From Geosiphon pyriformis uo1 (taxonomy: Eukaryota > Fungi > Glomeromycota), in contig JAAOMT010000200.1 of assembly GCA_016748015.1 (NCBI GenBank), positions 866,984 through 930,983 of the forward strand: a stretch of DNA of 64,000 bases. Direction: 5' to 3'. Shown piece by piece: positions 9,551 to 52,173 of this stretch. The notes beneath the pieces were generated by a model. It was given only the letters and a program-made list of their open reading frames with translations, was not told the DNA's origin and did no database searches. Each line of letters starts with the position of its first letter. Positions within the stretch are counted from its first letter, which is position 1. The position numbers and the translations under genes were made by a program.

Positions 9551-10170
9551 ATTGGTTGGTTTGTTGGATGATTGGAATCATTGTCAATATTGATTGGGAT
9601 GATTGGAATCATCGTCAATATTCAGGATTCAAATATTTTTAGGAAATCACAGTCAAAGCAGAACTCGTCATTGATTGTTCGGTGTGAACCATTGTCTGCT
9701 CAAATCTAGAGTGAACAAACCAAAATAGGGAATAGGTGTCATTTAGTGACTGAAGATTTGGTTCCTGCCTATCAAGTTAACTTCATTGTTTCTGCTGGGA
9801 ATATTTTTGTTAATTTTTCGTGGAATTTCTGTACAATAGAATTTTTTCCAGATTGAAGTTAGATATGGTTTAATGAAAGTAAACAAAGGATAAAATATTT
9901 GTTTTATGTTACACTAAATTAAGTCGTCAGATTTTTCTAAAACCCACGCACAGCCATGGAAATTAAAAGTTTTTAGTGAATAATAACGTTTCAGAAGATT
10001 CAAAATAACCCCTGGAACCCCACTTTATCAATATTTTTCCGAATAATTTTGTTTTGATTGGTTTGAACTGGTTAATTATTTTTGGTTTGGTTTTGGACTC
10101 TTTTTTACCTGAGTTAGTCATTAAAAGGGTTCACGTTAATTGAAGATATTAATTAGTTTTGATAAATTAG

Positions 10171-13769: not shown

Positions 13770-15086
13770 TCAAGATCCCGAAGCTATCACGCGTACATTC
13801 CAATTACATGTGCGGCCAGCTGGGATGTTTTTCCTGAGATTCAAGTTTTCCTCGTGAGTTTTGTTTAACACCATGAACAACATCCTTTTCAAACTCGAGA
13901 AGTCACGTTGTCTACCTACCCTCTTTTCTTTATGGTATTTGATAATTGTCTTATAGAGGTATGTGGGGGAAAGGAAAGTCAGAACTAGGTCTGGTTTAAC
14001 CTCATTAAGCAAGATAGAGTTTACAAGATGAACGGTGGCCGAAGTGACTTTGAGAAAGGGAAAACTAAATGTATCATCCTCCCGTCTTTCGAGACCTATG
14101 CTCTGAAAATACGAGTCAAAAGCAGTGTACAGATTGCTGTCAGTGCTGCGGCCATATTTATTAGGTGGTACATATTTCGGAGTTGCTACATAGTTCGGAG
14201 TTGCTGGTTGATGAGGAACGTATTCAAATATCGAACGATTAAATCCGAATTTTTTTTCTATGCCTTCAAATCCATTTTCTGTTCGGAATAAAGTATGACA
14301 GAGGACTAACACTAGCTTTGGAGAGATGACGTAAAAAGAATGGTAGGGAATTTGAAATGGAACAAGAATTCCCAATCGATTCACTCCTTCAAAGATTCCA
14401 AATCCGTTGCAGGTTATTATAAACTTATCATTTTCACCGGCTTGCCAAATTACGAGAAAAGAATCGACCATGCGCAGCTCGTAAGCTTCCCTATCTAGCG
14501 TAAAGATTCGCAAGTTGTCTTTGATCTCTTCATGCGGGGTCTCTAGTATTTCACGGATGTTCTGTAACCACAATTCTTGAGGCTTTTTCAACTTCTGCTC
14601 TCGCATAAATTTTTTTACCATCAACAAAGTGAGAATATCAAAACTTTCATTGGAAAATTGGGCCCATCGATGACGGTTTCGATAGTTCATGACAAAGAGG
14701 AACTTGCGTAGATTCGAAAGGTCTCTTCTGACTAAAACGATCTGACTTTCCACTTGAGATGCCTTTATAATATCTCTAACCACTTTTGATGCTTTTTCTT
14801 CAAGTTTTGACAGTTTATCTTCTACGTGCATCGCGTCTTCGTGATTAAGATCTTTATACATGTTTAGGTATCCAAAGGTTTTCGCGACTAAAGAGATGCC
14901 CAGTTGACCGATCTTTCTATCGTAAATTTGGAGAAGTGCTTCTGCCTTATTCTTATTCCTAAAGTTCTGTTTCTGATTTTTCTGTTTGAACAGCTTTTCC
15001 TTGCTCACAAATATCCTCTCATAATTATTGATAGCAAAATTACGAAGAAGGAATCTTGGAATGTAGTGATGGTATTGATCTTCCAT
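13770..15086 (-). CDS. DUF4238-like protein, 438 aa, intronless (paralogue A)
   Basis: Long ORF with N-terminal QYHHYIPRFLLRNF motif typical of DUF4238; intact paralogue of the same length at 50857-52173. Confidence 0.8.
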   Translation of the reverse strand: MEDQYHHYIPRFLLRNFAINNYERIFVSKEKLFKQKNQKQNFRNKNKAEALLQIYDRKIGQLGISLVAKTFGYLNMYKDLNHEDAMHVEDKLSKLEEKASKVVRDIIKASQVESQIVLVRRDLSNLRKFLFVMNYRNRHRWAQFSNESFDILTLLMVKKFMREQKLKKPQELWLQNIREILETPHEEIKDNLRIFTLDREAYELRMVDSFLVIWQAGENDKFIITCNGFGIFEGVNRLGILVPFQIPYHSFYVISPKLVLVLCHTLFRTENGFEGIEKKFGFNRSIFEYVPHQPATPNYVATPKYVPPNKYGRSTDSNLYTAFDSYFQSIGLERREDDTFSFPFLKVTSATVHLVNSILLNEVKPDLVLTFLSPTYLYKTIIKYHKEKRVGRQRDFSSLKRMLFMVLNKTHEENLNLRKNIPAGRTCNWNVRVIASGS

Positions 15087-17884: not shown

Positions 17885-19320
17885 ATGATGACTAAAAGCA
17901 ACAGTGTTACTTGGTTATTAAAAGCTCTATTTGCCATCTTTTTTCTCGAATTCGCTATCTTCATCATCTATGGTAAAAATCTTAAACGGTATGACTTTAA
18001 ATAAAAATTCTTTCACTCTAAATACTAATCTTTTAATCAAATTGGTAAAAGACCTTTTCTTGAACAAATTACCTCTGTTTGTAAAGAGCTTCCGGGAAGT
18101 AAACCCTATTAAACGTATCCACGTTATCAATCCACCTAGTAGTCATAAAACTAAACAGATTGCAAGGTCAAACCTTAGTCAAGGTGGTATCAAGAGTGAA
18201 TACCAAGTTCCTAATATAAAACGTGATCGTATTGATGAATATGCATGGTGGGCAATGCGATCATATTGTTTGGGTCAAAATAACTTGGTTGGCCCTGGGA
18301 TTTATGGTAAGTTTTAAGATAAACAATAAAATTTTACAAGTAAATCGTTTAAAAATGACCTTAAGCATTTAAATTATTCATCATATTTAGCGGCGGTTAC
18401 CGTACGTGATTACAGATTAATTTTAATGGTTAGAGGAGAATCTAGGGTTGATAATCAGCAATACTGGTCAACTCGAAATAATCAACTTGTCGACTATCCT
18501 ACAACAATTCCAGCGGCTATTGGAGCTAAAGTTGATAGAATCTTTTATGAAAACTTTCAGAGAACCAACGGACAAATTACGCCACTTATTTTATCGGCTA
18601 TAAAAGAACACAATATTAAAGTAATTGTGGCCGTTGGGCATGGTTCTGGTGGTGGTGAGACGAAATCTTCCCTCAACTTTGGTTCAATATCATCTTGCAA
18701 ATTCAATTAAAAGTGATGGTTATTTTTTTAGTCTATGCAGTGTTACAAATGTTGGAAATGATTCACTTGGATCTAAATATACCTCTGAAAGTATATACTT
18801 TTGGACAGCCGCATCTAGGCAACAGGGAATTCGTGCAACAATTTGATGATATAAACGATGGAGAAAGAATTTCTGTAAAAAGGGTGACAAACCTGGATGA
18901 TTACGTACCAAAACTTCCACTAAGTACGGAGCAGATGTTTTATGTGCAAAGTAATACAGAAATTTGGATTGAATCTGATGATTGTGAATGTCCTACGGGT
19001 AAGACCTTTATATGCCTCGGGCCGATAATTTATCAGCCTAATCGGCCTGCGATTCAGTTGGAAAGCCAGGTTAGTATTTTACCATTATGATAATTTTTAT
19101 TTTTTTAGACGTAAAAATAACTTGAATCAATTGAATACTATAGGAATGTAATGCTCAGTTTACAAACCCAAATTTTTTACCAAATAATGGCCCTTATTTT
19201 GGGTATATTATGGGAAACTGTTTAAATGACGCACCCCCTTGGATTATTTCTCCACCTGTTCAAGAAACTCTCGATCTGAATTGGTGGAAAAGGTTTTGGT
19301 CAAGACTTCTGGGCTGGTAA
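17885..19320 (+). CDS. Class-3 lipase-fold protein, probably catalytically inactive. Five exons: 17885-17972, 18052-18306, 18391-18654, 18732-19069, 19144-19320
   Basis: GT-AG splicing joins the frames; N-terminal hydrophobic segment; LILMVRGE, VAVGHGSGG, VYTFGQPHLGNREF, RVTNLDDYVPKLP, EIWI, C..NGPYFG motifs. Confidence 0.85.
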
Positions 19321-22501: not shown

Positions 22502-22633
22502 ATGCAACCAACAACCAACAATCAATCTTCATTCAATCCACTCTCAATTATCGCTCCTGGCAACGGCTCAATTAAAGGACCAACTGGTGACCCAGATGAT
22601 GGTAGTGGCACTGGTCAATGCTCAATCATGTAA
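22502..22633 (+). CDS. CaaX (CSIM) lipopeptide pheromone-precursor-like peptide, 43 aa, copy 1
   Basis: ATG..TAA with AAACAAAATG context and TATA at -121; identical protein in five copies with only synonymous differences. Confidence 0.9.
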   Translation: MQPTTNNQSSFNPLSIIAPGNGSIKGPTGDPDDGSGTGQCSIM

Positions 22634-23530
22634 AAGTTGCAGAGTACTCACATTGAAGATACTCTTTTTTCGACCATCCCAGTAAATTGTATGAAAAATT
22701 ATCGTCGGCACTTCTTCAAGTTAATATAATGCAAATTCGGACTCTTTACATAGATATCTAGTTCTTAATAATTAACGGTCGATAGAATTACTCGCAACTA
22801 AAGGATACGGCATATTTTTATTTCACTATTATTTAATATTAATTGTGTATTAGCACTAGAGTAATATAATTTGGTTAGTTTTAACAAAATATTCTTAATA
22901 TGTAAATTTGATAATAATAGGCTTTAATTTTTGAACCAAAAAATCTTTTTTTGTCCAAGTAAAATAAAGCTATTTGGACCTTTAAAAATATCTCACTTAA
23001 TATCAAAGTGAAACTTGAAAGTCAAATAAGAACCTGTTCAATCTTTACTAACTCAACTCATAACTGATATTTACCTTGAAAATTATTAAATTTTTGAAAG
23101 TTAAGAGATTAAAGGCTTGTGATAAATATATATAAACCAATCTTTGAAATATATTTCTCCTATCAAAATTGATTGAAATTAAAATTACTGTTTTATTTAC
23201 GCTCAAATTATTCTATTCCATTTTTTTATTTGAAGTTATGAATTTTTCTTAAACATATCTTTTAACATTGAAAAAAATCTAATCTCTAATTTATACTTGT
23301 AATATGAATTGATAATAGAAGTTAAAATGCCCAAGTTTATTATACTAACAATTAAAAAAATGCCTATAAAAAAATTGCTTTTGCGAAAAACTATAACTCT
23401 TAATACTGCATTGTATTTTCAGGTTTTTTTTGTACTTTTAGCTATTAAGCATTAAAATTTTGATGCAAAATTTAGAATTTATATTTTATTGTAATCTAAG
23501 CTTAAAATTTATTGATGACTTTATAACAAT

Positions 23531-24265
23531 AGAGAGTTTGCGCTACAATGATTTCTTTGTAAATTTACTTCTAGCAGTCCCAAATGGAATTCATTGTAGA
23601 ACAGAGTTTGTGCTACAATGATTTTCCTTGTAAATTTATTTCTGCAATTGGCTAGTGATTTCACGTAATTTTAATGCAAAAGCGTATCAAATCTCACCAT
23701 ATGGAGTCCGAGAACTTGACTTTTGACAGCCTGCGAATGGCTACACTTCTGCTACTACTTCATAAGCGTCAACAGCAACTGGCCATAACAATGAAGACAA
23801 TATTTGAACCTGAACGTCCATTGATTCCCAATACGAGACTTGATCTAAATGCACTTGATGAGGGAACGTGTGTAGCATTTTTCCGGTATGAAGATAAAAG
23901 TTTTATATGATTAATGTAACAATAATGTTTTGAAAAGTATATTGAAGACAACGGCTTATAGATTCAACAAAATACAGATAGAACAACTTGTTGGGCACTT
24001 CCGAATTCCATCAGTTAGTATAGTGAATACTTATTCACTAACAATAAAAATGGTCCACAGTCTTAAAATAGGTTTGAGAATATCTCTCTTAGGTTTGGAC
24101 ATATTTTAAGACATACCTTGTCAGCTTTTGGCTACAGATTGCAAAAAATTAGATAACAAAAATCTCTTACTTGTACAAAGAATTCCGGTTTTAAATTTAT
24201 CTGTAGCCACAAATTTGTGGCTACAGATAAATTTACAAAGAAAATCATTGTAGCGCAAACTCTCT
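23531..24265 (+). mobile_element. 735-bp internally deleted PIF/Harbinger-superfamily (PHIS) DNA transposon
   Basis: About 37-bp TIRs (AGAGAGTTTGCGCTACAATGATT...), AAT duplication versus the empty site near 28470, subterminal repeats, spliced transposase N-terminus (..LDLNALDEGTCVAFFR/FNKIQIEQLVGHFRIP). Confidence 0.85.
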
Positions 24266-25184
24266 AATAAGTATTAGAATTTGGAATGACCAAAGTGGTT
24301 TACATAAAAATTGAAAATCAAATTTGAAAAATGCAACATAATTATTGTTTAAATAGTTAAAGATGCTAATTAATCATCAAAAAACTTCTAAAGAATGCTC
24401 AATTATTTAATCAGAGATTACTACTCTTAAATTTGTAGAATGTAGGAAATACTCTCAAAAATTTCTAAAGAAAAAAAATGCCCAGATGTAAAACTCTACA
24501 TTGTTAAACACAATGGGAAAATAAAACTGACGTTATTATGAATAAATTGTCTAAACGTTAATTTAACATTTTTTATTACTATTTAAACTTCAGATTATAA
24601 AATTCAAAGAATATTTATAGTTCAAGCAGAACAATATCTACTCCAAAACTCGCATAACATCTATATTGTCGTTATAATTGAAATTTCCTTATCAAGCGAG
24701 ATGGTGCTCGAATGAAGATTAAAGATTGTTGACATAGATTCTTTAGGAAAATATAAAATTATCTAAAATTGCCCAAGTTATTTCATTCTTTAGCGGATTA
24801 AAAATTTGAATAATAAGAGTTTATAGTCAATTTTGTCATTTAAAAGGAATATTTGGAGATAAAACTTATTATTAAAATTAAATACGAATGCAAAGTGAGT
24901 TATATAATTAAACATCTTTATAATTTATTCTAAAACTAGGCGAATAATTAGCAAGAGGTTATTTAGACCTAATATAAATAAAATTTAATTTAAAAATAGT
25001 GTCATTTCTACTCAAATAAATTCTAAATTTGAAAATGAAAGTCATTTTATTCCCAATATTTAAAGTATATTTGTTTAAGAAAATTTTTAAAAAAGATATC
25101 CATTCACAATCTTAGACTCAATCAAAATTTAGATTTTGTACAACCATAACACGTTTTGAAGAATACCCTTTTTAAAAAGCCTGT

Positions 25185-25420
25185 TTACGGCATTGTAAAT
25201 TCATCCATCCGTTCTATATTCTATAATATTGTAGTGCAAAGAACAATGACCTACCTCTTGCCTTTTTCGACTAAAATAATCAATTATAAAGGCTGATCCA
25301 TTTTTTAGGATATTGTTTGCATAGCATAACAATTCATATGTTAAATTGGAATATAATATAACTTTTTTAGCATTCTATTTCAATTGATATTGTTTCTTAT
25401 AACATCTTTTTCTATAAAAC
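25185..25420 (+). promoter_or_regulatory. Promoter of peptide gene 2: HMG-box-like sites and TATA box
   Basis: GGCATTGT, ATTGTAGTGCAAAGAACAATG, ATTGTTTGCATAGCATAACAAT, TATAAAA at 25413. Confidence 0.6.
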
Positions 25421-25534
25421 TGGTCGTGCCTTCCCAATTTCTTTCATTCAATCCAACCAAAAGAACTTAAAGAAAAGGAAAAGAAACTGAATTCTCAAAT
25501 TCAAATTCAAATTAAATCAAATAACTTAAACAAA

Positions 25535-25666
25535 ATGCAACCAACAACCAACAATCAATCTTCATTCAATCCACTCTCAATCATCGCTCCTGGCAACGGC
25601 TCAATTAAAGGACCAACCGGTGACCCAGACGATGGCAGTGGCACTGGTCAATGCTCAATCATGTAA
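25535..25666 (+). CDS. CaaX lipopeptide pheromone-precursor-like peptide, copy 2
   Basis: Same 43-aa product; 4 synonymous differences from copy 1; CDS identical to copy 4. Confidence 0.9.
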   Translation: MQPTTNNQSSFNPLSIIAPGNGSIKGPTGDPDDGSGTGQCSIM

Positions 25667-27039
25667 AATTCGCAGAGTATATATATTGAAAATTCTCTTT
25701 TTTCGACCATCCAATAATAAGTGTGAAAAATTATCATCAGCACTTCCGAATTATATACTTCAAGTTAATGTAATGCAAATTTAGACTCTTTACATAGTTA
25801 TCTAGCTATTATTAATCAATATTAAAGCAAAAGTCAATAGAATTATTTATAATGAAATGATATCGCATATTTTTCTTTCACTATTTATTAATATTAATTA
25901 TCTATTAGCATTACTTTTATAAAAGTCATTGGTTTTACTAAAGTTCAAAAAAAATACTTCTAGCATCTAAACTTAATAAAGGAATGCTTTAACTGAAGAA
26001 CTATAGAACTTTTTTTTCAAGAAAAAATTTGGTTTTATATCATAAATAAAATACAGCTACTCGGGCACTTTTAAGGTATATTCTTAGTGAACTTGAAAAG
26101 TGAATTATTCAACGCAAAAATTGAGCCTTAGATATTTTGAATCCCAAAAAAAAAGAAACCTAAATAAAAAATCTGAAGTTTTTACTGCTAATAAAATTTT
26201 TGATTTTGCTGTAGGAAATGCATAACTACTATTTAAAGTAATTTTAAATGTTATGAGCCATTTTTCGCTACTTTTTTTAGCTTAATTTAAATTTTGATGA
26301 CATAACTCATTTAAGTTTTTGAATTATTGTTTCTAATTTAAAAATTTTACGGGCAAAAAAAAATTGACATAAATATATAAAGTGTCACGATAGAAGGTTA
26401 TTAGACTAGAAAACAAAAAACTAATATAATATATATTAAAATTTAGAAATAAACAGTTAAACATGACATCCTTTTTTGAAAAATAACGAATTATTTAAAT
26501 TGGGTTAAATTGTTTCGCCCTTTAGCAGGTTTCGGTTTGAATCTCTAATTAGCAGCTATTCGAATAAGGCGTTGAAATAATTAAATTACAAAGCAGGAAT
26601 CCTTACAATTAATACAGGAGAGGGTAGCAAATTTATCTAAAAACTAAAATAATAATAAGTGTCAATTTGGTATGGGTAGATCGAAAAATTCGAGCTTTTT
26701 AAAATAAATTTTCATATGCACACTTAGCAAAAAGTTTTTAAAGCCTCATAACATAAATAATATTTTTTACTAATTACTTATTAATTCAAAGTTTCTCTCA
26801 TATCAATTCAGATTAATTTTGGTATTCAAAAGCATTCCGTTTATAGATTGATACTTGTACTAAAAGTCAATTTATTCACGATTTTTTTGGTATATTTGCT
26901 TATGTAAAGGTTTTAAAAATATATTCATTTGCAATCTTAAATTCAAAGGTATTTTGCATGCTAGTGATAAATTTTCTTGCATGTAATACTCATTAGCATA
27001 CAGTTAAACATTAGAAACTGAAATAACCGAAATTAGAGT

Positions 27040-27360
27040 TTTTAACATTGTCTGTGAATAATAAGTATTCTTTGTACAACTATAATACCTTTTTGAAGAA
27101 AACCATTTTGAAAGCCTGTTTACGGCATTGTAAATTCATGCATCCGTTCTATAATATTGTTGTGCAAAAAACAATGACCCACCTCTTGCCTTTTTCGACT
27201 AAAATAATCAATTTTAAAAGCTGATCCGTTTTTAGGACATTGTTAGTATAGCTAAACAATGCGTTTATCAAATTCATGATTAAATTGAATAATGGTTTGA
27301 CTTTTTTAACATTCTGCTTCAGTTAATATTGTTTCTAATCATATCTTTTTCTATAAAATT
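27040..27360 (+). promoter_or_regulatory. Promoter of peptide gene 3: HMG-box-like sites and TATA box
   Basis: CATTGT x2, AACAATGACC, CATTGTTAGTATAGCTAAACAATG, TATAAAA at 27352. Confidence 0.6.
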
Positions 27361-27472
27361 GATCGTGTCTTCCCAATTTCTTTTCATTCAACCCAACCAA
27401 AGTAACTAAAAGAAAAGGAAAAGAAATTGAATTCTCAAATTCAAATTAAATCAATCAAATAACTTAAACAAA

Positions 27473-27604
27473 ATGCAACCAACAACCAACAATCAATCCT
27501 CATTCAATCCGCTCTCAATCATTGCTCCTGGCAACGGCTCAATTAAAGGACCAACTGGTGACCCAGACGATGGTAGTGGCACTGGTCAATGTTCGATTAT
27601 GTAA
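27473..27604 (+). CDS. CaaX lipopeptide pheromone-precursor-like peptide, copy 3
   Basis: Same 43-aa product; 8 synonymous differences from copy 1, three of them within the CSIM codons. Confidence 0.9.
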   Translation: MQPTTNNQSSFNPLSIIAPGNGSIKGPTGDPDDGSGTGQCSIM

Positions 27605-29504
27605 AAGTTCCAGAGTATTCATATTGAAGATTCTCTTTTTTCGACCATCCCAGTAAATTGTATGAAAAATTATCGTCGGCACTTCTTCAAGTTAATATAA
27701 TGCAAATTCGGACTCTTTACATAGATATCTAGTTCTTAATAATTAACGGTCGATAGAATTACTCGCAACTAAAGGATACGGCATATTTTTATTTCACTAT
27801 TATTTAATATTAATTGTGTATTAGCACTAGAGTAATATAATTTGGTTAGTTTTAACAAAATATTCTTAATATGTAAATTTGATAATAATAGGCTTTAATT
27901 TTTGAACCAAAAAATCTTTTTTTGTTCAAGTAAAATAAAGCTATTTGGACCTTTAAAAATATCTCACTTAATATCAAAGTGAAACTTGAAAGTCAAATAA
28001 GAACCTGTTCAATCTTTACTAACTCAACTCATACCTGATATTTACCTTAAAAATTAATAAATTTTGAGAGGAAAGAAATTAAAAGCTTGCAATAAACTAT
28101 ATTTCTCTTAACAAAATTCATTGAAATTAAAATTAACTGTTTTATTTACGCTCAAATTATTCTATTCGATTTTTTTATTTAAAGTCATCAATTTTTCCTA
28201 AAAATATCTTTTAACACTGGAAAAAATCTAATCTCTAATTTATACTTGTAATATGAATTGATAATAGAAGTTAAAATGCCAAAGTTTATTATACTAAAAA
28301 TGCTTCTATAAAATATTGCTTTTGCAAAAACTATATTTTTAATACTGCTTTAAGAAAAAACAATATTACATTGTATTTTTCATGACTTTTAGCTATTAAG
28401 CATTAAACTCTTGATGTAAAAATTTAGAATTTCTTTTTTATTGTAATCTAAGCTTAAAATTTTCTTGATAACAATAAGCATTAGAATCTGGAATGACCAA
28501 AGTGGTTTTACATAAAAATTGAAAATCAAATTTGAAAAATGCAACTTAATTATTGTTTAAATGGTTAAAGATGCTAATTTATCATCAAATAACTTCTAAA
28601 GACTGCTGAAATATTTAATCAGAGATTAATATTCTTAAATTTGTAGAATGTAGAAAATACTCTCAAAATTTTTTAAAGGAAAAAATGCCCCGATGTAAAG
28701 CTCTTTATGGTATAACACAATGGGAAAATAAAACTGCCGTTATTATAAATGTATTGTCTAAACGTTAATTTAACATTATTTATTACTATTTAAACTTCAG
28801 ATTATAAAATTCAAAGAATATTTATAGTTCAAGCAGAACAATATCTACTCCGCAACTCGCATAATATCTATATTGTTCTTTATAATTGAAATTTCCCTAT
28901 CTTCCTATTTTCGACTTAAGAATTGAAGAATGGAAACGAGATGGTGCTCGAATGAATATGAAAGATTGTTGAACATAAATTCTTTGGGAAACTATGAAAT
29001 TATCTAATATTGACCAAATTATTAATTCTTTAGCGTGTTTAAATTTGAATAATAAGAGTTGATAGTCAATTTTGTCATTTAAAAGGAATATTTGGAGGTA
29101 AAACTTATTATTAAAATGAAATACGAATGCAAAGTGAGTTATATAATTAAACATCTTTATAATTTATTCTAAAACTAGGCGAATAATTAGCAAGAGCTTA
29201 TTTGAACCTAATACAAATAAAACTTTAATTTAAAATTACTATCATTTCTATCCAAATCAATTCTGAATTTAAAAGCGTTTGTTCATAGATTGATACTTTT
29301 ACTAAGAAAACAAAAATGCTATTTTATTTCACATTCACTGAATTTCGAACATAAATCTTTCCACACATTTCACTTGTAAAGAGATTCCAAAAAAATCATA
29401 TTTAAAATCTTTAATTCAAAAGTATTTTGCATGGTAGTCATAAATTTTCTTGCATTAAGATGTTGTTAAACATCAAAAATTGAATAATAGAAATTTAAAG
29501 TTCT

Positions 29505-29785
29505 TAGCATTGTCCGTGAATAAACATGTATTCTTTGTACAACTATAACTCAAAAGTCTGTTAACGGCATTGTAAATTCATGCATTCATTCTATAATATT
29601 GTAATGCAAAGAACAATGACCTAAAACTTGCCTTTTTCGAGTAAAAATTATCAATCTTAAAATCCGTATTTAGAATATTGTTAGCATAGCTTAACAATGC
29701 ATCTGTCAAATTTATGATCGAATTAGGCTTTTTTAATATTCTGCTTAATTAGTATTGTTTCTAATCACATCTTTTTCTATAAAAC
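29505..29785 (+). promoter_or_regulatory. Promoter of peptide gene 4: HMG-box-like sites and TATA box
   Basis: CATTGT x2, ATTGTAATGCAAAGAACAATG, ATTGTTAGCATAGCTTAACAATG, TATAAAA at 29778. Confidence 0.6.
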
Positions 29786-29899
29786 TGGTCGTGCCTTCCC
29801 AATTTCTTTCATTCAATCCAACCAAAAGAACTTAAAGAAAAGGAAAAGAAACTGAATTCTCAAATTCAAATTCAAATTAAATCAAATAACTTAAACAAA

Positions 29900-30031
29900 A
29901 TGCAACCAACAACCAACAATCAATCTTCATTCAATCCACTCTCAATCATCGCTCCTGGCAACGGCTCAATTAAAGGACCAACCGGTGACCCAGACGATGG
30001 CAGTGGCACTGGTCAATGCTCAATCATGTAA
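29900..30031 (+). CDS. CaaX lipopeptide pheromone-precursor-like peptide, copy 4
   Basis: Same 43-aa product; CDS identical to copy 2. Confidence 0.9.
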   Translation: MQPTTNNQSSFNPLSIIAPGNGSIKGPTGDPDDGSGTGQCSIM

Positions 30032-33019
30032 AATTCGCAGAGTATTTATATTAAAAATTCTCTTTTTTCGACCATCCAATAATAAGTGTGAAAAATTATC
30101 GTCAGCACTTCCGAATTATATACTTTAAGTTAATGCATAGTTATCTAGCTAATAATAATCAATATTAAAGCAAAAGTCAATAGAATTATTTATAATGAAT
30201 AGATATCGCATATTTTTCTTTCATAATTTTTTAATATTAATTGTATATTAGCATTATAGTAATATAATTTGATTGGTTTTACCAAAGGTTAAATTAAATA
30301 TCCTAGTATTTAAATTTGGTAATAAAATGCTTTAATTCAAGAGCCATAAAATCTTTTTTCTCAAAACAAAATCAAGCTAATTGGACCCATAAAAGTATAT
30401 TTCTTAATGACGAAGTGAAATTTGAAAGTTAAATAAGAAACTAGTCAATTATTACTAACTCAACTCAAAGCATTCGAATATTAAGATGATCATAAACCTT
30501 GTAAAAAACCAAAACCTGAATTAAAAAGTCTTGATATTTAATTTCTGAATTTAGTTTTAAAAAACTGTGAAGTCGTTTTCACCATGCAGGAAAATATTTT
30601 AAGTTAAATCAAATTTTTAAAATATAAATTATATTACTTTTAATTGTTATTTTAATTTGAAAACTTATCAGCAAAGCAGTAGCAAAAATCTTGAATTTCT
30701 TTATATAGCTTTCAAATTATTCATATATTCAGCAAAAAAGTGAAGCTTATTCTTTTATACGATTATTCCCTACTGAATAAAGCTATTTCCCAAAGTCTAT
30801 TTTGAAACTTTCCACAGAATTAATCTAGAGCCTCTGACAAGAAAACTGCGATCATTCAATTCTCAATAGTGTGAAAATCATTAAAATCAGTCATGAAAAA
30901 TTCTATGGTTTGAATTATTTAGTTATCTTAATTGTTTGATTTCTCGCTTTTGTGTTGAAGCTGGAAATTTCGAAAAAAAAATTCAAATTATCAATTCTAA
31001 GGATTTTTTGCTTTAGCAACTTTAAAACCAAGGTTTTTTCATTGAATCTATTTGTGTATTAAATATTAATAACTTATCTACTCCATTAAAATTTCAATTC
31101 TGTAATATTATGAAATTATTTCTTAATTATTTCGGTGAATTAATAAACTGTCAAAAATAAATAAAAAAATATCTCTCTCTTTGATGCTAGGGATATTAGG
31201 CTCAATTAGATTTTTATCATATTTTATATTAATCATAACTAGATTCACTCAAAATCTTGATTTAACCTAATAAAAAATAAGCCATTTTTAGAGTGTTAGC
31301 GACATTATTAAGAAAATATTCAAGGTAACAAATACTATAAAGCTATTTATTATCATTATGATACACTATAGATAACAGGAAAATGAAACCCTATTTAACA
31401 AATATTAATGCACTTAAGCAATATTTCCTCTTTGCATAAAGAATTTCTCCAAGAAAATTTGTTCCGAAAACATATATTGATATAATTCACCAAATTCTAT
31501 TTTTATCGGATTTTTGAGCACATCATGAAAATCTTGAAATTAGAAAAACTCACCCCAACAGCTGAAACAGAGATAAACCTTTGTAAAAAGTAAACAAAAT
31601 CTATTTTATTTACCCCATATTCATCTTCAAAATTATTAAGTTTTTGAAAGCAAAGTGATTAAAAGCTTGGAATTAATATATATCATCGAATTAAAATTCA
31701 ATTATTTCTCCACACTCAAAATATTCTATGGCACTATTTTTATTTGAAGTTATGAGTTTGCTTAAAAATATTTAGAAGAAATTTAAGCCCCAATTTTTAC
31801 TTTTAATATAAATTAATAATAGAAATAAAATATCGAAGTTTATTATGCTGACAATTGAAAAAATGCCTCTAAAAACGATTGCTTTTGTGAAAGAATATAT
31901 TTTTAATACTATTTTGAACTTATAGTTATTAAGCAACAAAATTTCTGATATAAATTTAGAATTTATTTTTTATTGATGAATTTATAGCAATAAATATAAG
32001 AAAATATTTTCAAGGATTATTATTTAATATAAAATTATTTAATTTTGAATATCTCAAGATTGTCAAACAAATATTTATACAAAATTCGATATAAAATTAT
32101 CCAAAATTTAGATTCATTATTATTTAGATAGTAAAATATGTTAATTTAATCATAAAAAACTTATAGAAAATACTGTATTTCTTAATATTAACGAAAAAAT
32201 AATATACAATCAGAAAATAAAATTTTTAAATTTTCAGGGTTTAGAAAATACCCTCAAAAAATTATTAAAGAACATAAATAAACAAAGTGCAAAGCTCTTC
32301 ATGGTTAAAAACAATTGGAAAATAAAACTAAAAAGTTAAAAATGAAGCATTGTCTAAACGTTAATTTAAAATTTTTTTATTAGTATTTAAACTTCAGATT
32401 ACAAAATTCAAAAATATTTATAGTTCAAGCAGAACAATATCTACTCCGCAACTCGCATAATATCTATATTGTTCTTTATAATTGAAATTACCCTATCTTC
32501 CTATTTTCGACTTAAGAATTGAAGAATGGAAACGAGATGGTGGTCGAATGAATATGAAAGATTGTTGAACATAAATTCTTTGGGAAACTATAAAATTATC
32601 TAATATTGACCAAGTTATTTCATTCTTTAGCGTGTTTAAATTTGAATAATAAGAGTTTATAGTCAATTTTGTCATTTAAAAGGAATATTTGGAGGTAAAA
32701 CTTATTATTAAAATGAAATACGAATGCAAAGTGAGTTATATAATTAAACATCTTTATAATTTATTCTAAAACTAGGCGAATAATTAGCAAGAGGTTATTT
32801 AGACCTAATATAAATAAAAATTTAATTTAAAAATAGTGTCATTTCTACTCAAATCAATTCTAAATTTAAAAATGAAAGTCATTTTATTCCCAATATTTAA
32901 AGTATATTTGTTTAAGAAAATTTTTAAAAAAGATATCCATTCACAATCTTAGACTCAATCAAAATTTAGAGTTTGTACAACTATAACAATTTTTGAAGAA
33001 TACCCTTTTAAAAAGCCTG

Positions 33020-33260
33020 TTTATGGCATTGTAAATTCATCCATCCGTTCAATAATATTGTAGCGCAAAGAACAATGACCCAAATCTTGCCTTTTTCGAC
33101 TAAAATGGTCAATTTTAAAAGCTGATCCGTTTTTAGGATATTGTTTGCATAGCATAACAATTCATTTGTTAAATTTATGATTAAATAGAATATAATTTAA
33201 CTTTTTTAACATTCTGCTTCAATTAATATTGTTTCTTATCATTCCTTTTTCTATAAAACT
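33020..33260 (+). promoter_or_regulatory. Promoter of peptide gene 5: HMG-box-like sites and TATA box
   Basis: GGCATTGT, ATTGTAGCGCAAAGAACAATG, ATTGTTTGCATAGCATAACAAT, TATAAAA at 33252. Confidence 0.6.
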
Positions 33261-33362
33261 GATCTTGCCTTCCTAATTTCTTTTCATTCAATCCAACCAA
33301 AAGAAATAAAAGAAGAGGAATCCTCAAATTCAGTTTAAATCAAATCAAATAACTTAAACAAA

Positions 33363-33494
33363 ATGCAACCAACAACCAACAATCAATCTTCATTCAATCC
33401 ACTCTCAATTATCGCTCCTGGCAACGGCTCAATTAAAGGACCAACTGGTGACCCAGATGATGGTAGTGGCACTGGTCAATGCTCAATCATGTAA
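33363..33494 (+). CDS. CaaX lipopeptide pheromone-precursor-like peptide, copy 5
   Basis: Same 43-aa product; CDS identical to copy 1. Confidence 0.9.
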   Translation: MQPTTNNQSSFNPLSIIAPGNGSIKGPTGDPDDGSGTGQCSIM

Positions 33495-38898: not shown

Positions 38899-40039
38899 AT
38901 GGCTTTTGAAATTGATAGCATTCAGTTAACCGTTGTTATGTTTAGCGTTGTTATAAGTTTAGCTACAAGTACAGTATTAATACGATATATGTGGAAAAGG
39001 TTTACTTATCTGAGACTTGCTTGGTAAGATTTCTTTGATTGCGGTCTTTTGTTTTCAAATTGTTTTGAGTAATTAACAAAAAAAATTAACATTCTGCTTT
39101 TATATGTTCTCGACCCCTTCCCTTTTCAAAAGTGTTTTTGCAGGAATAACAATAATTCTCTTATCAACATGCAACCTTCTAAAAACCCTATTTCCAAACA
39201 CAATCTACGAAAAGTGGTATTGGTTCTGTTATGAACTTCTCTCGGGAACATACACCTCCCTAATTACAATTTTCTTATTATTCACTGGGCGACGATTTTA
39301 TGCGCCACAATCTCGACACAATAACCTTTTCAAATTTACATGTTTCTTTCTTTTGGCAACTATCATCGTACACGGGACAATTGCATTTTTTGTATTACCA
39401 CCGCTAATACAAAGTTCTTCGACGCTTTCTGAAAAGTTTGAGATAAAAAAAGAACCCAATCTGAACTCATATATTGTTCAAGTGATAGTGAGAATGCTAG
39501 TTAGCGTCTTTGGATTTTTGTATGCTTTTATGCCAGTCTTACGCTTACAATTCCGTTCCATGAAAAAGGAATATGGAAATGCAACGAAACCTGACAACAA
39601 TAATATGAACAAGTTGAATAATAATGAAGGATCAACATATGATAGAAAAGAACTCAACCCACAAAATGCCGCAGTTGGGATATGGTACATGACCACCATT
39701 ACATTATTAGTCGTATTATACATTTCGTTTTACGCATCAGTATTCATTCTTGGGATGAAGAATTCGGTAGAAGGAAGCACAAAGGCTCCATTTTTGCCAG
39801 TGAATAATGCCATTGATTTTATTTTACGGATTGGAGTCTTACTTGTTTATGGTATTCCTCCTTCTGGAGTTGTGCTGAAATTTTTGATCAAGAAGATCAA
39901 AGGTAGTAACAAGTTGAATACAAGTGATGATTTTAATATTAGTATACATGTTATAAAAAATTTTGATGAAGATAACACAACTATTAATGAAGATGTTGAA
40001 AGCAGTAGGGAAAGCCAGAAGGGCTGGTTAGATTTGTAG
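38899..40039 (+). CDS. Seven-transmembrane (GPCR-like) protein, 343 aa; exons 38899-39023 and 39133-40039
   Basis: GTAAG..AG intron joins MAFEIDSIQLTVVMFSVVISLATSTVLIRYMWKRFTYLRLAC in frame to the 39104 ORF; seven hydrophobic segments, long polar loop between helices 5 and 6, acidic Ser/Thr-rich C-tail. Confidence 0.75.
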
Positions 40040-41098: not shown

Positions 41099-42620
41099 TT
41101 AAATAACACTCATCAAGCAATCCCCGGAGGAAGATCCCGGCAGTTGTACACATTGGACCTTCCGATTCTTTGGATTTTGCCATATTACAAGTCTTGGATT
41201 GTAAGCTTCGTTCTGGATAATAATACGGACCCCTAATTCCTTAACCTTGCTGATTAGACGTTGTCGAAAACAATAATGTCCCCAACAATGCATTTTCCAA
41301 ACAGTTTTTCGTGTAATCTTTCTTGTCTTGCGATTCACTATCTCTGAAACTTCAAAAGGAGGAAATGACAATGGCATCGAATTCGGGAAAAAATCTAACT
41401 GATTTCCAGTGATTTCACTTTGCATACATACAGCTTTTCGCCACACTCGAAATCGCCTTATCGAGTCGCCAGGCCATTTATTTTTACATTTTGAGGAGGA
41501 TACTAATAAATTATTCTTTTTGCAGATTATATCATCCAAGTATTTGCAAATGCCAACATAGGTCCAATAGAATGTTCACCAATCTTATATGCACCGTTTG
41601 TGGGAGAGTACCATGTAAAAGGTGTATAAGCTCCAGAATTAAATAGAGACTGTATGAACAGAGCTATTCGCTTGGGTTTCGCAGAGCTGTTTTTATGTCT
41701 CATATACTCAGACTAATTCTACTCATTAATTTTGCGAGAATAAGTGAGCTTGCCATCCGACATTATCTGGTGAAAAACCGGCCGCTATTATTATGTCTCT
41801 TTTTTCCGAAATGAAAAGGCCTTATCATTATCCAGAATGATGGTACGCTTATAACAATGTGTGTAAGCATCATCGGATTATGGAGATAAGTGACATAGAA
41901 ACGTTTCTATGTGGATTTCGAAAATTTCTGTGCACGAATTGTCAGTTTGTCGCAGATCTTTCAAGATCGAAATGATAGTGTGTTGATAGGCCTTGCCGAT
42001 TCGCATTACACTTAATCACTTCTTCCTTAGCAATAAATACTTCATCAATTTTATCAGTGGGCGCTTTGCCGTGCACACTCCAAAACATTCTGAGACACAC
42101 AACAGTTCGGATGAACTTGCGCTCATCCCATGTTCGGAGTTTTTTGTCTTCGTTTTCATTAACTTAATTTCCAGGCAGAAATCTGTTTAAAGCTCAAGTT
42201 ATCTTGATGGATTGAGTCTTCATCCAAGAGTGTTGATATGGGTGATGTCGACACTATTAGACAACGATACTATAAGCAAATCTCGTCAAGCCCAGCCACC
42301 GCTTCAAGAGCTGCTTTTGAAGATGTTTTAGATACACCTTGATTAATAGTGAATTGTTGAGAATATCTGATATTGCTACGAGCTGTTATGCGTTTTTCGT
42401 CTGCTATGATGCTCCCGTCAATAGCAGCCAGCTGCATGCGACAGATAAAGACTGTGTTGATAAAAATGTTTATGAAGAGGTCGGCAAAGTATATCCTGGT
42501 GGGTGACCACAACTTTCGAGACCATTCCGCGACTTGTTCGTAGGTGGGAAATCGAGAGAGAAGTTGCTTTGTCGCTCGATCCTCTTTTGCTTTGCACTAG
42601 AGACACGGGTATAGAGTTAA
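41099..42620 (-). mobile_element. Decayed Fanzor/TnpB-like RNA-guided nuclease gene
   Basis: Fragments EWSRKLWSPT, QKLRTW, RuvC-I-like SLFNSGAYTPFTWY, KITRKTVWKMHCWGHYCFRQRLISKVKELGVRIIIQNEAY, SKTC, VYNC, GIFLRGLLD; multiple frameshifts. Confidence 0.7.
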
Positions 42621-42702: not shown

Positions 42703-45700
42703 ATGTTAATCATTGATTGGCTTCATCATTCGATAATTTTTTGTTTGCTTCCTTGCTTTATGGTATTCTCTGGACAAAAGCTGTCAATGTCACCAGTGCA
42801 AAAAACGCTATTCTCTTTTATACAGATTCAGCGCCTTCTATCAAAGTCTCATACTAATTCAAGGACATTGAAACATCAAGCATCCTCTAATTGTTCACGC
42901 TCTCAGCGACTCATTAATAAAGACCGCTACTATATTCTCTCTCTGAGGGTTACTTGTAAATTTCGTCCTGGGGATTTCTTCCTGTCTCCACCAACAGGAA
43001 TTAGTCGTTTTTTGAGTACAAACTGTAGCGCTGAACTCCAGGTTAACAAAGTACCAGACCTGGATAAGTCGAATATTCCTTGGACAGTAAAATGTTTTCT
43101 TGCCCTTCTGAATGAATGTGCCAATCAGGCTCATAAAGAGCGACAAATTGACCCAAATGTGATGAACGTCATGTGGGACTTATATGTCTCAATTGAATCG
43201 CAAGAAAAAGTATTTTTGAAGTTGGATGATTTCAATCTATTTATCTATATATTAAAACATTATGATCACAAAATCAAGCAACAACCATCAAAATTGATCA
43301 AGATTCTAGATGATATCAAGGAAGTCAAGCTGAAGTTTGGGAGGCAGCACTACAATACTTTGATTCAAGCACTAGGATGGAAAAAAGATCTAGCAGGTGC
43401 ACTAATGGTTTTCCTCGAACTACAATCTCATAGATTTCCACCAAATGGAGTGACTTTCGATTCATTAATGGATGCGTTCCTCTCGAGTTTTAATCACAAG
43501 GAGGCCATGAAATTATATCGGGGGCTCAAAGATCCCATTATCCCACAGGATGTTCCCATAAAATTTTTCATCAAACTTCTTAAGTTTCAATGTGATCGAG
43601 GCTATCTGAAGTCTGCGATCTCAATATATAAAGATATGATAGAGGCAGATCGACAACCCTCGATCTACGTAGCCAACGTAATCTTGAGTGCAATATGTGA
43701 ACATAATGATTTGACGACAGGCTTACAATTTTTTCGAGATAATTATCCCCCAAACGCAGCAAAAATTGCTTCTAGTTACAATATTCTTCTTACTACTGCA
43801 CTCCAAAATGACGAACGCATTATGATCCTTCAAATTTGGAAAGAAATGGTAGACAACGAAGTGGAACCAGATATAATTTCATATACACTTCTAATGCGAC
43901 TTCATCTCCGCGAATTGAAGCTCAGAGAAGCTCTCGATGTTTACACAGAGATGCTTAAAATAAATATTATTCCAGACTCTCCTATATTCCGGATTTTGGT
44001 TCAAGCGTGTGTTTTCAAGGAAGAGTGGAAACCTATGTTGCCATTTATTTGTGAAGAAATGAAACAATTCGATTTCATTGATCAGAGTTCTTTGACATAT
44101 AATATTGTTCTCAAAGCTCTTACTCAGCTTGGAATCAAGTTCGCCCAACGCGTTATGTATGATTTAATTTGTGCTGGATTATCTGTTGACAGTAGATCCC
44201 CTAAAGCTTTGATTGAAGAATACGTGTCTCGTAATGATTTACCAAGTGCCTCTCAAATCTTACAACGCTGCCAATCTCATAACATCCTCCCTGATCAACA
44301 AACATATGAAATTTTAATTCGTGCTTATATACGTGAAGGGAATATTTTACAAGTCCAAAAATACTATAGCGAATTTATTAGCAACAATAATCGCGATTTC
44401 CCTCAGAGAGCTTGGCCGAAACAAAACGATGACATATCCGGTATAAACGAATTTCTCAAATTATGTTCAAAAAACAAATTGAAATTCGGGATCGATTTCT
44501 TTGAACATATCCAAAAGCTTGGCTTCAAGGGAAACACAATGACGTACACCATATTAGTTCAATTTTTACTGGATTTAGGGCGTCGTGAAGACAATAAACT
44601 TTTAGCACGCATATACGAAAATGCATCTACCTCAAATATACAATTTCCTCTTGATATATATAATCTTTTATTGCGCCGGTTTATAATTACACGAAACACA
44701 ATATGCATGCATAAAGTCTTCGAGGATATGATGCATGCCAATCTTGAGCCCGATTCCGAAACATTCAGGGTTTTAGTAGACGGATTTAACAAATTTTCAG
44801 AAGCTGATGTATTGGAAATAGTTTATGATAAATTAAAAAAATCATTCAGTGCCAAATTGAGTAGAATTAATTACAATGGATTTATTTATGGATTCTGCCG
44901 GAATTCTAGAATGAATCTGGCTTATAAGGTATATACGGATATGCGCACGTCCGGATTGTCTCCTGATGTTATAACCTTTAGCCACTTAATCAACGGTTAC
45001 GCGAGTGAGAAAGATATTAAATCAGCACATCTGATATTCAGCGATATGCCCTTATCAGGAATTAAACCGACGATCGATATCTACCAATCTCTCATAAATG
45101 GATATATAAACTTATCACTACCATCAAAAGCCATCCAATTATATGAGGATCTGGCCAAAGTACAACCCTTTCTGATCGATAATTCGATTTATCATAATAT
45201 TATTTCGGCGTGCCTTCAAACATCAAACTTTGGGCTTGCTAACGAATTACTTAACAAAATGGAAAAAGACACAACCCCTTCCAAGAGATTCACTGGGGTC
45301 ATTATTCAAAGCATTGATCGTCAAGATCTTGGGACGGCTATTTTTATATTTGAACATATGGTAATAAAAAAAATAGAAATCACTTTATTATTATGCCAAC
45401 ATCTCGTAGAAGCTTTGTCGAAACACTCTGAATTTCCTTTGGTCCGTCGTTTATACCGTTATTTGGTAGCCCGTAAAGGTAGACGTAAAGTGCTGTTAAG
45501 TATGGCCCTCTTAAATTCTGTTATTAAATGCGCATCGATGACAAAACATACTAGATATGCTAAAAGGGTTCTCGAAGATTTACTGCGCTTTGGTTTCACA
45601 CCTTCGACTGAGACAATGAATGCCTTTATAAGTGGTCCGATCAGAGCAGGACACATTGAAGAAGCGAAAAAATTGATGGATAAAATGCGAGCTCTTTATA

Positions 45701-46497
45701 ATATCGCACCAAATACAGAAACTTTCTCGATGATGATCAATTCGTTGGTACATCGCGGTCAACTCGGAGAAGCAATGGCAGTATTGCGGTCAATGAAGCA
45801 AATTGACATTAGACCTAATATTGCAATATTCAATTCAATTTTTGACGGATATATTCACAGTTGCCCCTGGCGTGTTGCCTTACGTGTATTAGAACAACTA
45901 TTACGAGAGTATCCATTCAAACCTGATATTGGAACTGCCAACATTCTATGTGAATTTTTGATCAAGAAAAGATCTAGATCGTTACTAAAATTACGTGAAT
46001 TATATAATTGTTTGCATGGACGTGGCATGGAAGTTTTCATGAAAAATGAGATCGGGGCAGTAAAGGAACAAGTCAGTGAGTCGCCTCTAGTAAACGGACC
46101 TTCAAGGCTAGATTCTCCTTCTTTGGAAGTTGGAAAACCCTATCAAGATTTAATTTCACATGATAAAACCAATTTCCAAGATTTTGCCAGCGATCACCAG
46201 ATATTTGATTTACTTTTTAAAATTACAAAAATTCGAGTCAAAAATAAAAAATCTGTTTCCACAAATCAGCAAAATTTAAATGAGCTCATCGATGAACATC
46301 AAAAGACCCCCAAGAATGAAACACTCAATGAAATAATAGATTTATATTTCCAAGTAAGCAAAGAATCCTTAAAATCACTTACGTTGACTCGATCTACATA
46401 TGTAAAGTTCTTGAAAGCCTTCTGGAAATATGAAGATGTGAGTGCAACTCGGCAAGTCTTTGCAGATATGAGAAAAAGAAAAAAATTAATATTATAA
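42703..46497 (+). CDS. Pentatricopeptide-repeat (PPR) protein, probably mitochondrial; likely true start ATG at 42787
   Basis: 1264-codon ORF with many 35-aa PPR motifs (e.g. INYNGFIYGFCRNSRMNLAYKVYTDMRTSGLSPDVITFSHLINGY); Arg/Ser-rich, acid-free N-terminus from M29. Confidence 0.92.
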   Translation: MLIIDWLHHSIIFCLLPCFMVFSGQKLSMSPVQKTLFSFIQIQRLLSKSHTNSRTLKHQASSNCSRSQRLINKDRYYILSLRVTCKFRPGDFFLSPPTGISRFLSTNCSAELQVNKVPDLDKSNIPWTVKCFLALLNECANQAHKERQIDPNVMNVMWDLYVSIESQEKVFLKLDDFNLFIYILKHYDHKIKQQPSKLIKILDDIKEVKLKFGRQHYNTLIQALGWKKDLAGALMVFLELQSHRFPPNGVTFDSLMDAFLSSFNHKEAMKLYRGLKDPIIPQDVPIKFFIKLLKFQCDRGYLKSAISIYKDMIEADRQPSIYVANVILSAICEHNDLTTGLQFFRDNYPPNAAKIASSYNILLTTALQNDERIMILQIWKEMVDNEVEPDIISYTLLMRLHLRELKLREALDVYTEMLKINIIPDSPIFRILVQACVFKEEWKPMLPFICEEMKQFDFIDQSSLTYNIVLKALTQLGIKFAQRVMYDLICAGLSVDSRSPKALIEEYVSRNDLPSASQILQRCQSHNILPDQQTYEILIRAYIREGNILQVQKYYSEFISNNNRDFPQRAWPKQNDDISGINEFLKLCSKNKLKFGIDFFEHIQKLGFKGNTMTYTILVQFLLDLGRREDNKLLARIYENASTSNIQFPLDIYNLLLRRFIITRNTICMHKVFEDMMHANLEPDSETFRVLVDGFNKFSEADVLEIVYDKLKKSFSAKLSRINYNGFIYGFCRNSRMNLAYKVYTDMRTSGLSPDVITFSHLINGYASEKDIKSAHLIFSDMPLSGIKPTIDIYQSLINGYINLSLPSKAIQLYEDLAKVQPFLIDNSIYHNIISACLQTSNFGLANELLNKMEKDTTPSKRFTGVIIQSIDRQDLGTAIFIFEHMVIKKIEITLLLCQHLVEALSKHSEFPLVRRLYRYLVARKGRRKVLLSMALLNSVIKCASMTKHTRYAKRVLEDLLRFGFTPSTETMNAFISGPIRAGHIEEAKKLMDKMRALYNIAPNTETFSMMINSLVHRGQLGEAMAVLRSMKQIDIRPNIAIFNSIFDGYIHSCPWRVALRVLEQLLREYPFKPDIGTANILCEFLIKKRSRSLLKLRELYNCLHGRGMEVFMKNEIGAVKEQVSESPLVNGPSRLDSPSLEVGKPYQDLISHDKTNFQDFASDHQIFDLLFKITKIRVKNKKSVSTNQQNLNELIDEHQKTPKNETLNEIIDLYFQVSKESLKSLTLTRSTYVKFLKAFWKYEDVSATRQVFADMRKRKKLIL

Positions 46498-50856: not shown

Positions 50857-52173
50857 TCAGGATCCCGAATTTATCACGCATATATTCCAATTACATGTGC
50901 GGCTAGCTCGGATGTTTTTCCTGAGATACAAGTTTTCCTCGTGAGTTTTGTTTAACACAATGAACAACATCCTTTTCAAACTCGAGAAGTCATGTTTTAC
51001 GCCGCCCTCGTATTTATGATATTTGACAATTGTCTTATAGAGGTATGAGCGGGAAAGGAAAGTCAGAACTAGGTCTGGTCTAACCTCATTAAGGAAGATA
51101 GAGTTTACAAGATGAACGGTAGCCGAAGTGACTTTGACGAAGGGAAAAGTAAATGTGTCATCCGCCCGTCTTTCGAGACCTATGCTCTTTAGATGCGAGT
51201 CAAATGAAGTGTACCAATCGCTGTCAGTGCTGCGGCCATATTCATTGGGTGGTACATATTTTGGAGTTGCTACATATTTCGGAGTTGCTGGTGGATGAGG
51301 AACATATTCAAATATCGAACGTCTAAATCCACTCGTTTTTTCCATGATGTCGGATCCAATTTCTTTTCGGAATGAAAAATGACAGAGAACCAACATTAGT
51401 TTTGGGGAGATGACGTAAAAAAAATGGTAGGGAAATTGAATTGGACCAAAAATCCCCAGGGATTTATTCACTCCTTCGAAGGTGCCAAATCCGTGGCTGG
51501 TCATTATAAACTCGTCATTTTCACCGGCTTGCCAAATTACAAGAAAAGAATCATGCATGGACTGCTTGTAATCTTGTCTATCTACCCAAAAGATTCGCAA
51601 GCTGTCTTTGATCTCTTCATGCGGGGTCTCTAGTATTTCACGGATATTCTGTAACCACACTTCTTGAGTCTTTTTTAACTTGTGCTCTCGCATAAAGTCT
51701 TTTACCATCGACGAAGTGAAAATATCAAACTTTTCATTGGAAAATTGGGACCATCGAAGAGGGTTTCGATAGGCCATGATAAAGAGGAACTTGCGTAGAT
51801 TTTCAAGGTCTCTTCTAACCAAAACGATCTGACTTTCCACTTGAGATGTCTTTATAATATCTCTAACCACTCTTGATGCTTTTTCTTCAAGTTTTGATAG
51901 TTTTTCTTCTACATGCATCGCATCTTCATGATTAATATCTTTGTACATGTTATAGTATCCATAGGTTTTCGCGACTAAAGAGACGTCCAGTTTATCAATC
52001 GTTCTATCATAAATTCGGAGAAGTGCTTCTTCCTTATTCTTATTCCTAAATTTTTGTCTCTGTTTTTTCTCTTTGAATAGCTCTTCATTGCTCATAAATA
52101 TCCTCTCATAATTATTAATAGCAAAATTACGAAGAAGGAATCTTGGAATGTAGTGATGGTATTGATTTTGCAT
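50857..52173 (-). CDS. DUF4238-like protein, 438 aa, intronless (paralogue B)
   Basis: QYHHYIPRFLLRNF motif; 47 of the first 60 aa identical to paralogue A. Confidence 0.8.
   Translation of the reverse strand: MQNQYHHYIPRFLLRNFAINNYERIFMSNEELFKEKKQRQKFRNKNKEEALLRIYDRTIDKLDVSLVAKTYGYYNMYKDINHEDAMHVEEKLSKLEEKASRVVRDIIKTSQVESQIVLVRRDLENLRKFLFIMAYRNPLRWSQFSNEKFDIFTSSMVKDFMREHKLKKTQEVWLQNIREILETPHEEIKDSLRIFWVDRQDYKQSMHDSFLVIWQAGENDEFIMTSHGFGTFEGVNKSLGIFGPIQFPYHFFYVISPKLMLVLCHFSFRKEIGSDIMEKTSGFRRSIFEYVPHPPATPKYVATPKYVPPNEYGRSTDSDWYTSFDSHLKSIGLERRADDTFTFPFVKVTSATVHLVNSIFLNEVRPDLVLTFLSRSYLYKTIVKYHKYEGGVKHDFSSLKRMLFIVLNKTHEENLYLRKNIRASRTCNWNICVINSGS

Follow-up and report, generated by a model that had tools for sequence, protein, structure and literature searches.

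AM fungi and their relatives must sense signals from plants, microbes and other fungi, and to our knowledge almost no receptors are known for them. The main classifications of fungal GPCRs rest on Dikarya. Farnesylated pheromones are known to be bound by receptors of the STE3 type, and Ste2 binds unmodified peptides, not CaaX lipopeptides. The N-terminus of Ste2 is used for dimerisation and is longer than that of the protein described here. One STE3 ortholog per genome, and no detectable pheromone gene, has been reported for Rhizophagus, and AM fungi have been reported to have one STE3 ortholog (PMC3834313). The DUF6534 family of Agaricomycotina has been proposed, from predictions only, as a new class of fungal GPCR (PMC12842992); a text search of this survey of fungal GPCRs shows that the words ‘Mucoromycota’ and ‘Glomeromyc’ are absent from its text.

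The gene considered here lies in a 64,000-nucleotide stretch of the genome of Geosiphon pyriformis (the window, from whose first letter positions are counted unless a contig is named). Geosiphon is a glomeromycote (Archaeosporales) and not a basidiomycete. An earlier note, made from the letters of the window, had described a seven-transmembrane (7TM) receptor-like gene close to an array of CaaX peptide genes, and had proposed a possible pheromone/receptor (P/R) locus like those of basidiomycetes. The receptor-like half of this interpretation stands, at the level of the fold; the P/R locus is not supported, no conserved linkage having been found in the loci of relatives that were scanned.

The 7TM gene is on the plus strand and has two exons, 38899-39023 (125 nt) and 39133-40039 (907 nt including the stop codon), whose summed length is divisible by three and whose product has 343 aa. 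Exon 1 was read from its ORF and splice site. It supplies the ATG, an N-terminus of 6 residues, TM1 and then the first intracellular loop, in which a Leu-Arg motif is conserved, and its 3' end provides two bases of the split codon for Cys42. The predicted intron (39024-39132, plus strand, 109 nt, phase 2) has the donor GTAAGA and the acceptor AAAAG, and its position is conserved. Exon 2 encodes residues 42-343, comprising TM2 to TM7, helix 8 and a Ser/Thr/acidic tail. A word-indexed search with exon 2 alone found the NCBI protein G9A89_021130 (Geosiphon pyriformis, 343 aa, ‘hypothetical’) at 100% identity and coverage over the full exon; the first 41 residues of this protein are the translation of exon 1, and Cys42 comes from the split codon. 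The 343-aa model of the earlier note, built by adding an upstream exon that the ORF track had missed, is therefore exactly the deposited annotation. Whole-protein analyses were done on deposited G9A89_021130, and the exon pieces were searched separately.

The open frame that holds exon 2 (39104-40039, 311 codons) is among just seven ORFs of at least 120 aa in the 64 kb, in AT-rich DNA with a GC content of 13-39% per 2-kb window, mostly 22-33%. A short upstream exon, encoding a Met and a brief N-terminal stretch, then a single hydrophobic helix and a Tyr/…/Leu-Arg-x-Ala-Trp ending, is present in all five Geosiphon paralogs, and in all five the intron falls at the identical point and in the same phase. 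In the ortholog from Ambispora gerdemannii (CAJVPL010000096.1; L013), tblastn places a TM1 exon at 9667-9774 and TM2-TM3 from 9866, and the gap of ~90 nt between the TM1 exon and the next exon is at the position of the Geosiphon intron. The recovery of this exon and gap indicates that the exon structure has been kept across genera. As judged from these alignments, the two-exon gene is intact and conserved. The deposited model of the Ambispora ortholog (264 aa) is itself N-terminally truncated and starts mid-protein; the missing part is found at L013:9667-10021, with 55-56% identity to the Geosiphon protein.

Several other features of the window were noted in passing. The next downstream neighbour of the 7TM gene is an uninterrupted gene for a 1264-aa PPR protein (42703-46497, plus strand; PPR_2, E 3e-84), which is not related to mating or signalling. 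A 146-aa ORF 1 kb downstream (41099-41539, minus strand) is rich in Cys/His and in Lys/Arg, has no Pfam match and might be the remnant of a mobile-element protein. An ORF of 131 aa at 18695-19090 (plus strand) matches part of the class 3 lipase domain (E 1.5e-8) and probably represents a single exon of some larger gene. Two intronless ORFs of 438 aa, at 13770-15086 and 50857-52173 (both minus strand), share 68% DNA identity, and each adjoins extremely AT-rich DNA with a GC content of 13-16%. One of the two matches DUF4238 (E 1e-28), a mostly bacterial family and an odd resident of a fungal genome.

A Pfam scan of the 7TM protein gave no match. Its relatives were collected with a profile of seven sequences (the 7TM protein, the Ambispora protein and the five Geosiphon paralogs) scored against 1.84 billion representatives; 76 proteins reached E<=1e-3, and 31 of these E<=1e-10. 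The 7TM protein itself scores 286 bits (E 2e-80), a value that is partly circular as the protein is among the seven sequences of the profile. Thirty family records were looked up; all are hypothetical or unnamed metagenomic proteins, and those with a named source are all from Mucoromycota. Glomeromycotina contribute members from Ambispora, Paraglomus, Diversispora, Gigaspora, Dentiscutata and Acaulospora; others are from Endogonales (Jimgerdemannia), Bifiguratus, Mortierellomycotina (Mortierella, Linnemannia, Podila and Actinomortierella) and Mucorales (Radiomyces and Fennellomyces). A word-indexed search with a 47-sequence profile was saturated by Mortierellaceae, and among the matches listed there were no further taxa. 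No Pfam domain recurs among 48 full-length and 47 trimmed homologs and selected members. Isolated matches to WD40, RSN1_7TM and SET come from single chimeric gene models and were rejected as domains of the family. These proteins form a Mucoromycota-wide family that has neither a Pfam model nor a name, and a limited literature search found no paper that describes it. The more cautious option of the earlier note, that the gene may belong to a new receptor family or may have no relation to the peptide genes beside it, fits the evidence best.

Seven positions are at least 90% conserved in the 47 sequences: Y172, F174 and P176 in TM5, W226 and Y227 at the start of TM6, R274 in TM7 and P284 at the end of TM7. 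Also strongly conserved are G94, F97 and Y98 at the end of TM3, A222 and G224, D270 in TM7, and P285. The family motifs assembled from these residues are all encoded by exon 2 (G94-x-x-F97-Y98, Y172-x-F174-x-P176, A222-V-G-x-W226-Y227, D270 with R274, and P284-P285), and in the alignment the 7TM protein carries the full defining set. The helices are better conserved in their cytoplasmic halves (score 0.363) than in their outer ones (0.264). Conservation extends to ICL2 and helix 8; the outer loops, ICL3 and the C-terminal tail vary. A conserved inner face with a variable outer face is the pattern that would be expected if a conserved cytoplasmic partner were engaged.

In a maximum-likelihood tree the Geosiphon 7TM protein and the Ambispora protein are sisters (100/98), and both fall within a Glomeromycotina clade that also holds Dentiscutata, Gigaspora and Acaulospora (98/92). 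The five remaining Geosiphon genes group apart, in a subfamily that includes another Ambispora protein. The gene, as the single Geosiphon member of its clade, therefore looks vertically inherited and not like a gene that was added to a mating locus in one lineage. The six Geosiphon genes are on contigs C729 (the contig of the window), C692 (three genes), C366 and C475. The three paralogs on C692 lie within 45 kb (C692:1502780-1545629), two on the minus strand and one on the plus strand; dN/dS of the closest pair in this cluster is 0.78, which suggests a recently expanding cluster of receptor-like genes.

The genome is AT-rich and has many spurious short ORFs, and dN/dS of the close Geosiphon paralog pairs is fairly high (0.42-0.78), as might be found if the frame were open by chance or the gene were a pseudogene in decay, without function. 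This reading can scarcely be credited. A frame of 311 codons is intact in a genome of 27-31% GC, the split codon and intron position have been kept in paralogs and in another genus, 76 homolog clusters share near-invariant motifs, and coevolution within the family drives a confident AlphaFold model.

That model was obtained with the 47-sequence alignment (mean pLDDT 83.2, pTM 0.81); an earlier prediction with seven sequences was poor (pLDDT 54.5) and was discarded. Membrane helices are predicted at residues 7-33, 37-61, 68-95, 106-135, 152-189, 218-255 and 264-282, followed by helix 8 at 287-299. The third intracellular loop (190-217) has ~28 residues, is polar and has low pLDDT. The tail (300-343), also of low confidence in the model, has nine Ser/Thr and ten Asp/Glu in its 44 residues. 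Of the 124 residues in segments assigned to the cytoplasmic side, 21 are Lys or Arg, against 6 of 57 in those assigned to the outside, which fits an N-terminus that is out. The predicted architecture, with seven membrane helices, N-terminus out and C-terminus in, and helix 8 after TM7, is that of a GPCR. The features that had been read from the letters, namely the seven helices, the very short N-terminus, the long polar third intracellular loop and the Ser/Thr/acidic tail, all reappear in this model.

Foldseek against the PDB returned GPCRs and microbial rhodopsins solely, with weak E-values (0.01-0.05) and TM scores of 0.4-0.5, and sequence profiles of the family matched no PDB chain. The fold assignment rests on VIA-align, Foldseek alone giving weak E-values. 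In a search independent of Foldseek, Ste2 (7ad3) ranks first with a Z of 16.5 (245 residues aligned, rmsd 4.5, residues 1-296), followed by TAS2R14 (16.1), GPRC5D (14.9), TMEM87A (13.9) and many class A receptors near 13; differences of less than one Z count as ties in VIA-align, and such values are in the range that the tool flags as common for helical bundles. When the Foldseek candidates were re-aligned, all 1000 had Z>=5 and 998 had Z>=8. Among these, classes A and C scored ~13-14.7, with class C transmembrane domains at ~14-14.7, and the chains listed are GPCRs, microbial rhodopsins or TMEM87A. The structural check for a GPCR fold that the earlier note had proposed came out in its favour. 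As the top values are tied across GPCR classes, the fold is GPCR-like and carries no class assignment. The best match in the ESM Atlas is a nameless basidiomycete cluster automatically named ‘Family A GPCR-like’ (TM 0.61).

A GPCR fold is common to non-signalling proteins too, TMEM87A (Z ~14) being one example. The protein could be an organellar or trafficking 7TM protein, comparable with GPR137, plant TOM1/THH1 and TMEM87/GOST, that regulates membrane processes without G proteins. Its neighbours in ESM features include clusters with GPR137_N and THH1/TOM1/TOM3 domains at scores of 0.87-0.91, although by the calibration of the tool scores near 0.9 are leads only. UniProt automatically names one Diversispora member a THH1/TOM1/TOM3 domain protein, and the structural match to TMEM87A has a Z of 13.8-14.1. 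The extracellular N-terminus is very short, no ligand-binding domain is obvious, and the Mortierella members of 700-1650 aa have long tails (1000 residues) in which no known domain is found. However, neither the 7TM protein nor the Diversispora member matches PF06454 even at E<=10, a PF06454 search matches nowhere in the Geosiphon genome, and two bona fide GPCRs, Ste2 and TAS2R14, outscore TMEM87A. The link to THH1/TOM1/GPR137 that the language model had suggested found no confirmation in these Pfam scans and this genome search. An organellar role of the GPCR-fold protein, the main alternative to a receptor, is possible but less than probable.

The peptide gene of the window consists of five identical 43-codon ORFs ending in Cys-Ser-Ile-Met (22502-33494, plus strand). 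The 7TM gene starts 5.4 kb after the fifth copy (33363-33494, plus strand) and is on the same strand. No ORF of at least 60 aa between the two has a Pfam match, which agrees with the observation in the earlier note that the 7TM gene is the next identifiable gene. A second array, of six copies on the same strand, was noted ~42 kb past the 7TM gene (C729:949174-964099), and the gene is thus located between two peptide arrays. Genome-wide, 35 matches to the peptide coding sequence are spread over 13 contigs, and the two arrays on C729 account for 11 of these.

This arrangement invites the reading that the 7TM protein is the cognate or partner receptor of the adjoining CaaX lipopeptides and that the two form a P/R-like locus. 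The gene follows the fifth copy on the same strand with no recognisable gene in between, it is placed between the two arrays, its product is folded like a GPCR, and one of the tied best matches is to Ste2, a receptor for a peptide pheromone. We nevertheless consider this reading very unlikely. The 35 peptide copies on 13 contigs and the six family genes on four contigs overlap once: the gene studied is the only one of the six to share a contig with any peptide copy. Linkage was not found in relatives either. The loci scanned were those of the Ambispora ortholog (10 kb upstream, 4 kb downstream), one Dentiscutata gene (10 kb upstream and ~1.5 kb downstream, where the contig ends) and two Gigaspora genes (10 kb each side). 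In none of the four loci did tblastn match the peptide at E<=1, and there was no comparable CaaX ORF, only a few hydrophobic chance frames; the same scan recovered all five copies of the window. The scan covered at most 10 kb each side of four loci, and short, fast-evolving peptide genes could escape detection in it. With dispersed copies, a contig shared by one family gene in six and bare loci in relatives, the test of conserved linkage failed. In addition, the family is present in Mortierellomycotina and Mucorales, so that the role it had ancestrally was not bound to this peptide.

The pheromone receptor families give no support either. No STE3 (PF02076) signal is found in the 7TM protein at E<=10, and none recurs in its 47 relatives; no STE2 (PF02116) signal is found in the protein or in these relatives, in keeping with the failure to recognise Ste2 or Ste3 motifs by eye in the earlier note. 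A genome-wide search with PF02116 gave no match, but the controls likewise gave none. Geosiphon has a single canonical STE3 gene of its own on contig C642 (334886-335808; two exons, 148 and 75 bits against PF02076), in line with the lone STE3 ortholog of AM fungi (PMC3834313). The profile of the 7TM family aligned to the first exon of this STE3 gene has an hhalign probability of 0.2%. The STE3 contig carries no peptide copy.

Two estimates bear on chance. With 13-15 peptide clusters and the genes that flank them, one neighbouring multi-pass membrane protein would, as a rough estimate, be unremarkable. On the other hand, six genes and peptide clusters occupying well under 1% of 128 Mb make the adjacency look unlikely by chance, in an estimate made post hoc. 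The claim of a pheromone/receptor locus with this gene as the cognate receptor, including that of a basidiomycete-style P/R locus in Geosiphon, is not supported, and the proposed synteny of the gene with CaaX ORFs was not borne out in the four loci scanned.

On balance, we favour the explanation that the gene encodes an orphan GPCR-fold receptor of a Mucoromycota family whose adjacency to the peptide array is coincidental, rather than part of a P/R locus. The protein would act as an orphan membrane receptor. Its variable outer half may bind the ligand. A conserved partner in the cytoplasm, in the simplest case a heterotrimeric G protein, would be engaged by the strongly conserved inner face (the end of TM3, TM5, the start of TM6, the Pro-Pro of TM7 and helix 8). 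Regulatory phosphorylation could take place on the disordered third inner loop and on the tail. Proximity to the CaaX array would be a chance outcome of a dispersed, expanding peptide gene family, and the natural candidate receptor for the CaaX peptides would be the single STE3 gene elsewhere in the genome.

A bolder proposal, which we hold only tentatively, is that the family is an undescribed class of GPCR restricted to Mucoromycota. Glomeromycotina would have at least three subfamilies of it, and one of these perhaps senses a symbiosis-related or fungal signal that has no known receptor. An outside possibility within this proposal is that the copy in the window has been recruited to sense the adjacent lipopeptide. 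Whether as a class of its own or as orphan GPCR-fold receptors in the sense that we favour, the family is a concrete set of orphan receptor candidates that spans all Mucoromycota subphyla and has no Pfam model. The negative pheromone result removes a tempting false lead and makes the single STE3 gene the receptor of choice for tests with the CaaX peptides.

Among described systems, Ste2 (class D fungal GPCR, alpha-factor receptor, 7ad3) resembles the 7TM protein in its seven helices, its Ser/Thr-rich cytoplasmic tail and its fungal origin, and is a tied best structural match. It differs in sequence, with ~9-10% identity and no PF02116 signal in the protein or its relatives, and its Z is tied with that of human TAS2R14. 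Ste3 (a-factor/lipopeptide pheromone receptors, PF02076), the family to which the earlier note's comparison with basidiomycete loci pointed, is likewise a seven-helix membrane protein of similar size, but there is no Pfam match, the hhalign comparison is negligible and the canonical STE3 of Geosiphon is on another contig.

The TAS2R bitter taste receptors (class T, 8xql) share the very short N-terminus and the absence of class A motifs, with 248 residues aligned at Z 16.1. They are animal-specific and only 11-12% identical, and their likeness to the 7TM protein is one of fold alone. GPR137, THH1-TOM1-TOM3 and TMEM87 (GOST) have a GPCR-like fold without proven G-protein coupling and are represented among the language-model neighbours and, through TMEM87A, the structural matches; unlike them, the 7TM protein has neither a PF06454 match nor a GOLD domain. 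The DUF6534 family belongs to a different phylum, and no member of the 7TM family that was scanned has a DUF6534 Pfam match. It is, however, like the family described here, a lineage-restricted fungal 7TM family, and the top ESM Atlas match of the Geosiphon protein is also a basidiomycete GPCR-like cluster.
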